From the NCBI GenBank assembly GCA_000320545.1, contig ADNK01000515.1:1-62091 (forward strand): 62,091 nt of DNA, read 5' to 3'. Position numbers and translations under genes: made by a program. The notes below the pieces were generated by a model, which was given only the letters and a program-made list of their open reading frames with translations, was not told the origin of the DNA and did not search any database. Below are positions 4,840-13,737 of this stretch, piece by piece. Positions within the stretch are counted from its first letter, which is position 1. Each line of letters opens with the position of its first letter. This stretch comes from Bigelowiella natans CCMP2755 (Eukaryota; Protista; Cercozoa).

Positions 4840-7800
4840 CCATAGAATAAACAAACGATTGCAAGCTAGTTTGATATGAAGGATAAATCACCTTTGATGC
4901 ATCGAGACGCGGTTCAACATTTTCATATCGCTTGACTACCTTCCGGCGACGGGACTGATGATCGAATGAAAAATATTTAAATGCAGCATCGGAAGGCATG
5001 TGAAGTTTGTTGAAGGAATATGATTGCGGTCAAACGATCATTATTTCTCGGTACCTTCTCAGCGGACATCATGCTACGTCTTTCTTCTCTTCGCATCACA
5101 TTTGGGGACTTTGAATATTTCAAAGAGGGTGATCCTAACCCTTTGCCAGTCCTCCTCCTCATTGGCGCTGCGCGCTCATCTAGGAACGGATTTGGAATCG
5201 CTTGCGCAAGGAAGTATCCAGAGTTGAGAGCGCACCCCATTGTGACAGGACCAGTTTTCTTCTTCCAGGTGGATAAGTGAGTGTTCTAAGGAGATTATAA
5301 TTTTGTTGACATATATCGTAAGTGATTATGACAACGATGAGAGTGGTAACCCCCCCCCTCGCTGCACTAAACCAACTAAACGAGTCGCATGCCTTCGACA
5401 GGTCGCTTTCTAAGTCTTACACAAGGTTCCCAAAGTGCCAAAGAATTATCCAAAACTGGCAAATATAATCAAGTAGTCGTTGACGTCATGTGATTTCTCA
5501 AGGTATTCTTTTTATCGTAAAGTTCTTGGGATCCAATCGGCTAATCTGTACCAGATCGTGGAAACCAATCGCTTCCCGACGTAAAATCCCGTGCGTTTCC
5601 GTGTATCGGGCAGAGAGCCGTTAGAAGCTTGGCAGCGTTTGAGACGGAACTGTGAAGTCTGATTTTCGAAGAGCGAATTTGCCAATTTTCTCGTAACCAC
5701 ATGTGTTTCCCTAAAAAATAAATAAATCGGCTGGAGCAGCGCTTGCGAGCACCAAAGAGGAAGAGACGAAAATGAAAATGCGTCTCCTAGATCTACAGCA
5801 TCGCATACCCGTAAATGTGTACTCGGATTTTTGCGAGATTTGACAAAGTCAAGCATAAATGATGAAAATCGGCATGCCTTTTCCGGGAACAGGATGGTCT
5901 AAACAACACGAGCAGCTGTGTATGACCACCATGATGATGTCTCGTAGCCAATCCCCTTGCCTACCATGTACCTCCCTTTCCCGTTGCAAGTGTATATTTG
6001 TAACCATAATTCTGAGTGTACAAATTCCCCTGAGTGCCTGACTTACCCCTCCCTATGCGTGCGTCCTGCAGCAGCTAAATGCTGCTATCGAAGAGCCAGA
6101 AGATTGCGGTTGTCGGAGGTGGCGCCTTGGGGCAATACGTCAGTGCAAGGCTCACAGAGGCTGGCCATAGGGTTCGAAGGCTTGAGTGAACTTGTTTCGG
6201 TGGTATCTGTTTTTGAGGGTGGCGAAGAGTGTTCCGATGATAAGCTAGGGCGGCATGATCGATCCTGAGACATGAAAAACTCTCTACTTCATGATTGACA
6301 GGTAAATTTGTTGCTTCGAAGCGATTACGAGGCTGTGAAACAAAGAGGCATTATGGTAAGACAGTCTTCTAAATTTGTGACCAGATTCCCCGTGCGACCT
6401 CACAAAAATCGACATGCATGTCTCTTTTCCCTTTAATGACTACTCGGCACCATCATCGTCACCGCCATTAATTAAATAGGTAGAATCACCGGACGGGAAT
6501 GTGCACGTCAAGCCGGGGGATGTTGATGTGTTCAATAATACCAATGACATTGGACCAGTATGAATTAAAATAATAACAACAATAATAGCAAAAATAATAA
6601 TGATTACAAGACAACGAATATTTCCACACATTATAATTTCATTCTCCATGCGCGTCTCTTGCATCATCGCCGAGTCTGGAATCTAAACAACAAAAACAGG
6701 CTGACTGGGTCATTTGCGCACTCAAGTCGAACGCCCTTGAGAAGGAGAATGCTAAGGTGGGAATTCTCTACGACTACCGCGACCTTTTCTACTCCTGATG
6801 TCCACACTTCTTGTCTGATTGATTATAGAAGCTTCTGGAGCCCTGTATCGGCGACCATACCCGGGTTTTGTCTTTGTTAAACGGCATTGGCATCGATGAG
6901 GTGACACTTCTCCTTCCTGGCGCCCCTTCATTTTGTTTCCTATATCCTTCATTGTTACACAAGAAGAAATGCACAAGAGAAGATGACGATGTAGTGTACG
7001 GAATTTTGCTGCTCTGGGGGTGGCGGCGCCGTGAATCGTAGAATCTTAAATTCCCTCACATCTTCTTTTCCTCCCTCCTCCTCCTTCTTCCCCCAAAGTT
7101 GATGGCTGATATTGTTGGGGATTCATCACGTGTATTCGGCGGCCTGGCCTATATTGCAGTCAGGTGACAACAACCGATTTAACGAACGTTTATAATATCG
7201 TAGAAAAAGAACAAGACGATGAAAATTAAGTTATTAATTGCTGAAAATTAAGTTATTAATTGCATTAACTCGTAGCTCTTAGACTTTCCCCATGTCAACC
7301 AGTGCTCCTCTTCCCTCTCATCCCCTCCCTCTCCTCCTCCTCCTCCTCCTCCTTTTCCCTCTCTGCCATGATTTCTCAGCCGCAAAGCGCCAGGCCAGCT
7401 CTCACACGTGTTCACAGAGAAGACTACCATCGGGCACATGCTTAACACTAAGGCCGAGGTGCAGGCTGCTGTTGGTATGCTGAGCGATTGTAAGGGCATC
7501 AATGCGGGGGCGACAGAATCACTACTGACGACTCGATGGGAAAAGGCAATATGATGATTCTCTCTTCTAAGTCTCCCTTTGATGTTATTATTGTAAGTGG
7601 AAGCAGTAGCAGCTATGCCTAAAATGGACGATGAATGAGGCTACAATGAGCGACACACGACACGACGATCATTAAAAAAATCTCTTCAAAGCCTCAATAT
7701 ATTTCTGCAAAATTTGTGGCTTACCAAGACTTGATTATGGCTGTTGTTGCTGCTGTTGGTGGTGGTGATGGTGATGGTGGTGGCGCTTCCTTTCTCGGCC

Positions 7801-8522
7801 TCCCTCCCGCCCTCTCTCTCTCCCTCTCTCCCCCCGTAGCTTGCATGGAATTTTCCGTTCGCAGGCATGGGCATCGTTGCTGGAGGGGTTGCTTGTGGGG
7901 TATTACTACCTCTTACTAACTGCTACTATCTCGATCATCCACGGAATATACGACACATCATCATTGTCTATCATCAGAGTGCTGGCAGTTGTATGAGTAC
8001 TTTCACCAATTACCTGTAATGACTTGCCCTCTCCTCCCATTCTCTCCGTCTTCCCCCTATTTCTCTCTCGCTTTCACACATGTTCCTTAATATGCAGCTC
8101 CATTGTTCTCTGTTGGTTGTTTCTTCTCGGCATCTCGCTAACGCATCATACACGCGCACACAACACAACTCAATAGGCGTTGACTAAGCATGAAAAACTC
8201 TCTGGAATTACGTTCGAGGTGCTGATAGTGATTTGTGGCGGTGGCGGCAGCATGGCGAGTGTCCTGCATATTTCAGAACAGTACAGATTTGAACAAATGC
8301 TAGATTAGATTATTACTGGATGATACTGGGAAATAGAAGAGGATTAATATATTATGGCGAGCAAAATCTTGAATAGGAGTTTTATCTTCTCCTTCTAAAC
8401 TCATTTTTTTTTCTTCCTGTTAGATAATGAAGGAGGTGGTTGCAACCGCCAACGCTGATATTCTTCACAGGTGCGCTACTGGATTGATGCATGCATGCGC
8501 GCGCATCTCTATATCTTTCTCT

Positions 8523-8563
<41 letters not shown>

Positions 8564-11823: not shown

Positions 11824-11854
<31 letters not shown>

Positions 11855-13600
11855 ATAGTGATTAGAAGAAGACGGAGACCATAGGGGTGCTCATCTTTCC
11901 CTCCCCCTTTGAAAGTACACTTCTGTGTCTCCTCTCAGATGACATTGATGTGTGTGTGTGTGTATGTGTGTCTATGCGTGCGTGCGTGTTGATGGTGGTG
12001 GAGCAAGTTATTTTTCATGAATGTTGTACTGCTACTGTATTTACTACTACTGCTGCTGCTACTGCTACTACTACTACTACTACTATCTACACAATATAGG
12101 CACTCTTGGCGGAGATTCGGCGGGTGCTAAAGCCTGGAGGGGTTCTGGTAGTGGCACTTGTAGTAGCCGTGAATTACTGAGCCGAGGAATTAATATATAG
12201 GATGCATGTATGAGTAATAATAAGAATAATTATAATGATACTAAGAAACGCAAGGCTCTTGCTGCTTGCCCAACTACGACTACTACCTGCTGCTACTACC
12301 ACAACCTACCTTTTTTGTTTGGGAACACCCCAACAAACACGCCAAAGAAAGAGAGGAAGCACCATCTCCTACCTGCTCACTTCTTCGTTATCGGTGCCCC
12401 GTACACATACACATACCCAGGATTTCTGAGCACGATCCTCCACCATTTTATGGGAAGGAAGCTGATGCAGCATCAATGCGCACACTGCTCTGTTGTTGTT
12501 GCTAGGTGTTCTCCGACATTATGGGCGCTGATGGGGTTTCAGAGGAGGTCCTGAGGCCGTTCACAGATCGCAATACTACGACGGTGCTAAATACCCTCTA
12601 CTCGGACAGAATAGAAAACAGTAAAGGGGACAGTAGCAAAAAGGAGGGGAGGAGGGGGAGGGCACACAAGAGGAAAGTATCCATGAGGAATGCTTCTTCT
12701 GCTATTTCTCATTTATTCCCGGCGGCAATTTACTATTGGTTCACTGATGCTGTAGGGTCATCCTGCTCCTCCTCCTCCTCTCCCCCTCCTATTCTCTCTG
12801 CTACTAACTAGGTAATGGGTCGTCCGAGTGAGTACCGTTATCAGCTCAAGGAAGCAGCACTTCGAGAGGTGGTGCTACATAGAGTAGTAGCGAGGGGCAG
12901 TGCGCTGTCTTGTCAGCATTTAATGATGTATGGACAGGGCTAGCAGTCCTAGAATGGCGGATGGTTAATGAGAGAAAGACAGGAGAGAGGGGGGGGGAAG
13001 GAGGGCTGACCAACACATTTTTCCTCAACCAAAGCACCCAAATCATCATCCCTCCCTCATGGTTAGGTGTGCTACGTGGACATGTCACCAAATCTCGAGG
13101 AGTTCTTTGGTCTGATGTTAAAGCAGGTAGTAGCTTCTTGCCGCCCCACCACCACCCACAAGTAGTGGCTGTAGTAGTAGTGCTCCTTATGATGGTGATG
13201 CAGTAACGATGGAAATAACGGTAACAACGGTGTGTTCTTCTTCTTCTTCTTCTTCTTCTTCTTCTTCTTCCTCTTCAAGGTTGAGGATAATTACGACAAC
13301 CTCTTGAAGGAGGGCCTCACGGACGAGTACCTCCAAAACTGGATCAATTCGCTCTCTGACCGCGTTAATGTAGTAGTAACATCACATGTTTACTGTTACG
13401 GAGTAGTCATAATATTGTAGCTGCCGAAGAAGAAGAAGAAGAAGGAGTGATGATGGTGGTGATTGTGGTGGTGAAAACACAATTTCCAACTCCGTTCAGA
13501 TGAAGCAATTGAGCGAACAACTATTGCTTTTGTCAATGAGCGCTCCCGAATACTTCATCGTCATTGTCATCATCATCATCATCAGCACAGCATCGATCTT
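144..13600. repeat. Microsatellite-dense zone: (TAG)n, (CT)n, (GT)n, (GAT)n, (CAG)n, (GAA)n, (GGA)n
   Basis: Directly visible in most introns of the formin and fusion genes. Similar zones occur at about 38900-42150 and 52300-55400. Confidence 0.95.
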
Positions 13601-13737
13601 CCCAGTGAATCCATCACCTTGTAGCACTATATCCATGCTTCTAACCGCTTTATTCCCCACCCACCCACTACACATAGGTGCAGGCAGAGCATAATGCTTT
13701 TGCGTGGGGTGTCTTTGGAGCTGTGAACGATGCATAA
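6079..13737 (+). CDS. Fusion of a ketopantoate-reductase-family (ApbA/PanE) reductase and a class I SAM methyltransferase (SDMT/DsyG/DSYE-like); about 717 aa, 27 exons
   Basis: Hand-spliced, phase-consistent exons: 6079-6171, 6302-6355, 6480-6557, 6700-6756, 6829-6900, 7099-7163, 7380-7545, 7840-7899, 8177-8218, 8424-8470, 8798-8804, 8919-9035, 9380-9457, 9559-9987, 10183-10258, 10465-10532, 10785-10837, 10972-11003, 11130-11170, 11485-11534, 11692-11767, 12100-12147, 12506-12583, 12812-12868, 13067-13126, 13280-13369, 13678-13737. Reductase motifs: IAVVGGGALG, LLRSDY, DWVICALKS, LLNGIG, RWEKLAWNFPF, MKEVVATA, YLPSTVIDFKNGTPIESE. Methyltransferase motifs: FYKTVMGGGGNDIHFG, VLDLGSGHGG, FDYVYSCEVLCH, RVLKPGG, FAWGVF. 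Confidence 0.9.

Follow-up and report, generated by a model that had tools for sequence, protein, structure and literature searches.

A 27-exon fusion gene in Bigelowiella natans

The 62,091-nucleotide stretch of the chlorarachniophyte Bigelowiella natans CCMP2755 genome analysed here (contig ADNK01000515.1, hereafter the window) carries on its plus strand, between positions 6079 and 13737, a single gene whose product joins a reductase of the ketopantoate reductase family (KPR, or ApbA/PanE) to DSYE, a methyltransferase of dimethylsulfoniopropionate (DMSP) synthesis. The locus is eukaryotic, with many short exons, and a prokaryote-style list of open reading frames (ORFs) conceals the gene, although its motifs can be found on stop-free segments of the plus strand. 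An earlier note, made from the letters alone, had seen past this list and read 27 phase-consistent exons, a count that proved correct when the public proteins P0133 and P0038 were threaded onto the genome. The coding sequence, which runs from an ATG at 6079, immediately preceded by an in-frame stop, to the stop codon at 13735-13737, comprises 2,154 nucleotides (nt): 717 codons and the stop. Twenty-five introns are GT-AG and one is GC-AG (7546-7839). In the product, the reductase occupies residues 1 to ~320 and the methyltransferase residues ~440-717, separated by a disordered linker of ~120 amino acids (aa). The coordinates come from the threading of P0133 and P0038, and the full-length analyses rest on public transcript-derived records (L017, P0133, P0222, and P0038).

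The fusion and the identity of both domains are, in our view, practically certain. The transcript contig L017 (JGI 3300017184, 3,435 nt) aligns at 100% identity with window positions 6034-14075, through all exons and from the 5′ to the 3′ untranslated region (UTR); therefore, start codon, whole reductase, linker, and methyltransferase share one RNA molecule. L017, in which some 3′ introns are retained, encodes P0133, a 613-aa protein with ApbA, ApbA_C, and methyltransferase domains that was found by searching first with the DsyG part of DsyGD from Gynuella and then with a B. natans DSYE from MMETSP. P0222, from the 90% cluster of P0133, is a complete, fully spliced MMETSP ORF of 714 aa with both domains and a normal DSYE C-terminus. 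The expectation of one transcript across 9380-10258 was thus borne out, both by the continuity of L017 and by the single ORF of P0222. Contigs from three runs belonging to three studies (their kind is not on record, and we take them for RNA by guess only) provided 13 GT..AG joints over 6000-11999, hereafter splice joints, plus one loose end running into the next exon. Their depths over the reductase and methyltransferase halves were of the same order (172 versus 154-202, 77 versus 137, and 52 versus 79). Coverage was almost zero in a raw-read run. Identity between the locus and public B. natans transcript records is 97-100%, and 100% for one of them.

The 5′ UTR extends at least over 6034-6078, between the start of L017 and the ATG, and contains the in-frame stop. 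Exon 1 (6079-6171) holds the start codon and the Rossmann GxGxxG motif (VVGGGALG), and by itself matches positions 1-25 of ApbA (E = 4.8e-5). It is placed by splice joints, L017, and threading, as are exons 3 (6480-6557), 6 (7099-7163), 9 (8177-8218), and 10 (8424-8470). Splice joints, alignment to solved structures in the PDB, and threading agree on exon 2 (6302-6355; LLLRSDYEAV), exon 12 (8919-9035; YLPST, with the Tyr and Ser for the substrate carboxylate), and exon 13 (9380-9457; P-IESE, with the conserved Glu), and the same three, together with a family match, on exon 5 (6829-6900; LLNG). Exon 4 (6700-6756; ICALKS) is located by L017 and threading. Exon 7 (7380-7545), supported by PDB alignment, L017, and threading, has the catalytic Lys (RWEK) at its end and precedes the sole GC-AG intron, and exon 8 (7840-7899; PDB alignment and threading) encodes LAWNFPFAGMG, a motif also found in Lotharella. 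Exon 11 (8798-8804) is a 7-nt micro-exon, ATCCATG, preceded by AG and followed by GT, which finishes an Arg codon and adds Ser-Met; it was placed using P0133 and threading.

The two domains meet in exon 14 (9559-9987), which is stop-free and encodes the last KPR helix (9559-9576), a low-complexity linker rich in K, E, and S (~9577-9939), and the first 16 residues of DSYE (9940-9987). The earlier note had recognized in it both VSGLIDIL and the methyltransferase start (VVEQYDSEQ...) and had concluded that the fusion was genuine, as it is: the joint 9456>9558 occurs in all three runs, L017 is continuous, and P0133, P0222, and P0038 agree. Downstream, tblastn with P0038 and threading locate exon 15 (10183-10258; VMGGGGNDIHFG..., also supported by L017), exon 16 (10465-10532, with splice joints), exon 17 (10785-10837, with a domain match), which carries motif I for binding of S-adenosylmethionine (SAM; VLDLGSGHGG), and exons 23 (12506-12583; FSDIMG...FTDRNTTT), 24 (12812-12868), 25 (13067-13126), and 26 (13280-13369). 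Exons 18 (10972-11003), 19 (11130-11170), and 20 (11485-11534) are defined by splice joints and threading, exon 21 (11692-11767; LPEEWSDRFDYVYSCEV...) by the loose contig end, tblastn, and threading, exon 22 (12100-12147) by published peptides (see below), P0133, L017, and threading, and exon 27 (13678-13737; ...FAWGVFGAVNDA plus stop) by threading and P0222. The alignment of L017 gives a 3′ UTR of at least 13738-14075. Every motif listed in the earlier note (GGGALG, LLNG, RWEK, WNFPFA, PST, PIESE, VMGGGGNDIHFG, FTDRNTTT, and FAWGVF) is present.

Three introns (9036-9379, 12148-12505, and 13370-13677) are often retained in public transcript contigs. Because of this retention, published B. natans DSYE peptides start with MTMV or end with VVALVVAVNY* or VNVVVTSHV..., and the fusion was overlooked. 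MTMV is the first Met after the stop created by retention of 9036-9379, and two listed fragments start there; two others end in VVALVVAVNY*, a read-through into the intron downstream of exon 22. A Lotharella globosa MMETSP peptide in the same published list (Supplementary Table 3a, PMC11306096) runs from the KPR motif AWNFPFAG via the linker into DSYE. A second genus therefore shares the fusion, on which the authors did not remark. A protein search with the junction exon returned a low-complexity false positive as its sole match, and a degenerate DNA pattern for AWNFPFAGMG had zero matches in JGI metagenome contigs.

The whole B. natans assembly, searched with the reductase domain and a diatom DSYE, yielded no second copy of either fusion domain, this gene being the sole locus. 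Two further KPR-family genes lie on other contigs, at G000:C2041:3326-4572 (L001) and G000:C780:27026-28080(-); the first is intron-poor and PRK08229-like, with a canonical GKLLL motif. Both are candidates for the true reductase of the pantothenate pathway, so that pantothenate synthesis need not rely on the fused domain.

A clade A DSYE and a PanE2-type reductase

Four B. natans strains are represented among the clade A DSYE peptides published by Wang et al. (2024, Nat Microbiol, PMC11306096; Supplementary Table 3a), with entries of 280-304 aa that correspond to the translation of exons 14-27. In tblastn searches P0038 matched the window at 97-100% identity per exon, and the translations were also compared by eye with the table. 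Judged by these matches, the last ~280 residues represent the very B. natans DSYE already published in clade A, not merely a similar protein. The clade A enzymes of B. longifila and Norrisiella sphaerica have 4-methylthio-2-hydroxybutyrate (MTHB) S-methyltransferase (MSM) activity in E. coli (PMC11306096), and, given these assayed orthologue fragments, the B. natans DSYE domain would have the same activity. Among 48 methyltransferase domains placed in a tree, this domain groups within the DsyG/DSYE clade (SH-aLRT, an approximate likelihood ratio test, 100), which includes the assayed DSYE of Nitzschia inconspicua, DsyG of Zarconia LEGE 11467, and DsyGD of Oscillatoria, and it stands apart from bacterial enzymes that carry the annotation sarcosine/dimethylglycine N-methyltransferase (SDMT-like). 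The earlier note had likened its motifs to those of a DsyG/DSYE/SDMT group. Wang et al. (2024, PMC11306096) describe DSYE as a single-domain protein. The full-length B. natans product has ApbA, ApbA_C, and methyltransferase domains, which corrects that description for clade A: the listed entries are 3′ fragments of a 717-aa product.

The N-terminal 320 residues constitute a complete KPR-family reductase of the PanE2 subgroup. P0133 matches ApbA over residues 9-160 (6.2e-32) and ApbA_C over residues 189-318 (2.8e-15). The domain passes the TIGR00745 cut-off (168.8 versus 141.35 bits) and falls below that of its best equivalog, the PanE2-like NF004887 (205.9 versus 360 bits); it belongs to the KPR family but cannot be called a true ketopantoate reductase on these scores. 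Single-exon searches yielded marginal collinear matches to Pfam and NCBIfam profiles for exons 1, 5, 7, and 12 only, and no useful match in the PDB. The closest solved structures are 3HN2 (5e-39) and Pseudomonas aeruginosa KPR2 (PaKPR2; 8IWG/8IX9, 1e-33), the second-best match and the sole characterized one found. PaKPR2 is NADPH-specific, reduces a range of alpha-keto acids, and is inactive on ketopantoate; its ternary complexes define Lys196, Asn108, Asn200, Asn204, Tyr263, Ser266, and Glu278 (bioRxiv 10.1101/2024.01.05.573888). All these residues are identical in the algal domain (LLNG in exon 5 supplies the counterpart of Asn108) except Asn204, and the catalytic Lys (RWEK), LLNG, AWN, YLPST, and P-IESE all match in the alignment to 3HN2 and PaKPR2, in agreement with the catalytic Lys, Asn, Ser, and Glu that the earlier note had named. 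It had also singled out the exception. The second Asn of the K-x3-N-x3-N motif is Ala in B. natans and Lotharella (WNFPFA), versus Asn in the two closest solved relatives, 3HN2 (WNIPFN) and PaKPR2 (WNIPYN).

The B. natans domain thus shares RWxKLxWN, LLRS, Tyr-x-Pro-Ser, and the catalytic Glu with 3HN2 and the PaKPR2/PanE2 structures (8IWG, 8IX9, 8IXH, 8IXM), the LLRS motif of the NADPH-specific enzyme being kept in exon 2. Those proteins are bacterial and free-standing, whereas the algal domain is fused and has Ala in place of Asn204. E. coli PanE (1KS9, 1YJQ, 2OFP) has the two-domain fold family and the catalytic Lys/Asn/Glu logic in common with the B. natans domain, but it was absent from the PDB matches of the latter at E<0.01. 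The protein begins only seven residues ahead of the Rossmann strand and has an in-frame stop just before its start; it therefore has no targeting extension, which suggests a cytosolic product.

Other couplings of DsyG/DSYE methyltransferases to reductases

The search with the DsyG domain also retrieved a fusion in the opposite order. P0058, from Pinguiococcus pyrenoidosus, has the methyltransferase first and ApbA plus ApbA_C second, and its cluster contains P0231, a 695-aa MMETSP/UniRef protein derived from a transcript (UniRef100_A0A7R9Y932). P0122/P0225, of 693 aa, are encoded by a single uninterrupted ORF of 2,082 nt that recurs on several marine contigs, from Tara and other sources, of up to 308 kb with eukaryotic neighbours (L016:5001-7082; L030:8001-10082; L031:1777-3858). 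These DSYE-KPR proteins have a presequence-like N-terminal extension and a conserved SGRTF(S/A)T motif in the linker. As in B. natans, both domain families are represented in one ORF, but here the methyltransferase precedes the KPR, which is of another subtype, and the DSYE-like domain belongs to a clade of its own. The KPR of the reverse fusion is E. coli PanE-like, keeps K-x3-N-x3-N, is 22% identical to that of B. natans, and has as its best solved match E. coli PanE. Its methyltransferase partners form a clade (SH-aLRT 99) that is sister to the remaining eukaryotic DSYE and not to the chlorarachniophyte clade. Given the opposite domain order and the differences in KPR subtype and DSYE clade, the two fusions are therefore independent. 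Pinguiococcus is listed among the transcriptomes without DSYE, DSYB, or TpMMT (Wang et al. 2024, PMC11306096).

In all three contigs DSYE-KPR has a head-to-head neighbour, a gene of the class II aldolase/adducin family (L016:3600-4400(-); L030:6611-7453(-); L031:279-1121(-)). Its identification as MtnB of methionine salvage was unsupported (TIGR03328, 31 bits versus a cut-off of 137).

In bacteria the association takes a further form. A gene for a D-isomer-specific 2-hydroxyacid dehydrogenase (2-Hacid_dh) directly follows dsyG or dsyGD in Zarconia LEGE 11467 (L019:6837-7772), Nodularia harveyana (L020:7029-7982), and a Gynuella metagenome-assembled genome (MAG; L015:4831-5868), at a distance of a few to ~120 bases or with overlapping ends, in what looks like a conserved two-gene module. 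Over its first 104 residues, DsyGD of the Gynuella MAG closely resembles the G. sunshinyii protein. No such arrangement was seen in the Oscillatoria contig, of which a short upstream part was covered. DsyGD, known from Gynuella sunshinyii and Oscillatoriales, is like the B. natans protein in fusing a methyltransferase of the DsyG/DSYE type to an enzyme of a neighbouring step, but its partner is the downstream decarboxylase (PF04115), at the C-terminus, whereas that of B. natans is a reductase (PF02558 plus PF08546) attributable to the upstream step, at the N-terminus; PF04115 was not matched in P0133 and is present in the Gynuella protein. The possibility that the reductase next to Gynuella dsyGD is a KPR was rejected, as the protein belongs to the unrelated 2-Hacid_dh family and is encoded by a separate adjacent gene. 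Its link to the B. natans fusion is therefore analogous, not homologous. As far as domain assignments can tell, DsyG/DSYE methyltransferases are thus tied to predicted NAD(P)H-dependent 2-oxoacid reductases by three genetic solutions that draw on two unrelated reductase superfamilies.

A candidate for the MTOB reductase of algae

To our knowledge, genes of the transamination pathway, the dominant route to DMSP, are assigned only for the methyltransferase (DSYB, DSYE, TpMMT, and DsyG) and, in a few bacteria, for the decarboxylase (DsyD), and we know of no algal genes assigned to the aminotransferase or to the reductase of 4-methylthio-2-oxobutyrate (MTOB). The pathway uses D-MTHB. Chambellon in 2009 is said to have found that Lactococcus lactis PanE reduces 2-keto-4-methylthiobutyrate. 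An NADPH-linked reductase is needed directly before the methyltransferase (PMC5395565), and the simplest reading is that the fused KPR supplies MTHB from MTOB. The KPR domain would reduce MTOB to D-MTHB, which the DSYE domain would then S-methylate with SAM to 4-dimethylsulfonio-2-hydroxybutyrate (DMSHB), so that one polypeptide would hold steps 2 and 3 of the route. MTOB as substrate, the use of NADPH, the D-stereochemistry, and channelling between the domains are what we infer from the fusion, the neighbourhood pattern, and the chemistry of the KPR family, MTOB reductases being a class with no assigned sequence family. The complete mechanism, in which a PanE2-type NADPH-dependent 2-oxoacid reductase, a linker, and a clade A DSYE convert MTOB via MTHB to DMSHB, seems to us rather probable, and the fused KPR is a strong candidate for the missing algal enzyme. 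The broader proposal is that at least three separate couplings have arisen, namely KPR(PanE2)-DSYE in chlorarachniophytes, DSYE-KPR(PanE-like) in pinguiophyte-like stramenopiles, and dsyG/2-Hacid_dh in bacteria, and that the fused KPRs are the missing algal MTOB reductases and may channel MTHB; taken as a whole, it could in our judgement equally well prove right or wrong.

Several observations weigh against assigning the reductase step to the fused domain. The methyltransferase fragment is active without the reductase domain (PMC11306096), the fusion therefore not being obligatory for step 3, and most DSYE clades (B-E) are free-standing. Asn204 hydrogen-bonds the substrate in PaKPR2 (bioRxiv 10.1101/2024.01.05.573888), and its replacement by Ala in the algal domain removes a substrate-binding residue, which could mean a change of specificity or weaker catalysis. 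PanE2-type enzymes are promiscuous, and MTOB may therefore be one of several substrates; our literature search found no assay of a KPR domain on MTOB. The Gynuella 2-Hacid_dh, a predicted MTOB reductase, was insoluble and/or inactive in its authors' hands (PMC11306096), and since this sole tested candidate gave no activity, the bacterial analogy is also unproven. We found no DMSP content figure for Pinguiococcus, a candidate DMSP producer only.

The same promiscuity, together with the family models, which name the domain only a putative 2-dehydropantoate 2-reductase at a score below the equivalog cut-off, and the independent activity of the methyltransferase fragment, would fit an active 2-oxoacid reductase whose physiological substrate is not MTOB, be it a general D-2-hydroxyacid or ketopantoate reductase or an enzyme acting on another osmolyte precursor, the fusion then reflecting co-regulation or chance. 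We consider this rather unlikely. Two independent fusions of different KPR subtypes in opposite orders, and three bacterial dsyG loci followed by a D-2-hydroxyacid dehydrogenase of yet another family, form a pattern of coupling that is difficult to account for unless the methyltransferase receives its 2-hydroxyacid substrate from the reductase, and the two other KPR-family genes of the genome could serve pantothenate synthesis. It is less probable still that the Asn204-to-Ala change, shared by both chlorarachniophyte genera, marks a catalytically dead KPR domain retained as a dinucleotide-sensing or oligomerization module for DSYE: GxGxxG, the catalytic Lys, the counterparts of Asn108 and Asn200, the Tyr/Ser pair, and the Glu are all conserved, and the pinguiophyte-type KPR keeps the full K-x3-N-x3-N. 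We give this explanation very little credence.

The single mRNA might also yield two separate proteins, by internal initiation at a linker Met or by cleavage of the linker, in which case the fusion would be a co-expression device only. The linker is of low complexity over its ~120 aa, poorly conserved between Bigelowiella and Lotharella, and contains in-frame Met codons, and contig depth is somewhat higher over the DSYE half in two of the three runs. There is, however, no stop or frame change between the domains, the peptides starting with MTMV are explained by the retained intron 9036-9379 and the stop just upstream, and the reverse-order fusions likewise keep one ORF. We regard separate products as improbable, and the functional link between reductase and methyltransferase holds even if two proteins are made.

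On the preferred reading, KPR-DSYE would resemble DsyGD in being a bifunctional enzyme of DMSP synthesis, with the difference that its methyltransferase is fused to the enzyme of the preceding step. Our full-text literature search found no paper linking ketopantoate reductase or PanE with DMSP synthesis and none assigning an algal MTOB reductase; the sequences are public, but the fusion architecture appears to be undescribed. As the DSYE half was known and its orthologues assayed, the novelty is confined to the fusion and the candidate reductase. A complete and apparently active 2-oxoacid reductase joined to a validated MTHB methyltransferase provides a definite candidate for the reductase step that can be cloned, supported by the reverse fusion, and the two fusions make this missing step directly testable by a simple coupled assay. 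That pinguiophytes, listed without a DMSP methyltransferase, carry a DSYE-like fusion bears on meta-omic counts of potential DMSP producers; should the reading be correct, their clade would add a sixth, unrecognized DSYE group and new likely producers, and free-standing KPR orthologues could reveal the reductase in the haptophytes, dinoflagellates, diatoms, and prasinophytes that contain DSYB or DSYE.

In contigs of picoeukaryotes, the convergent next gene after a free-standing DSYE encodes a protein of the lactate/malate dehydrogenase (LDH/MDH) family (L027:9277-10389(-); L028:4527-5639(-); L029:9223-10362(-)). We did not count this neighbour as evidence, since the whole block is syntenic and the proximity may be due to chance; it is another 2-oxoacid reductase candidate.

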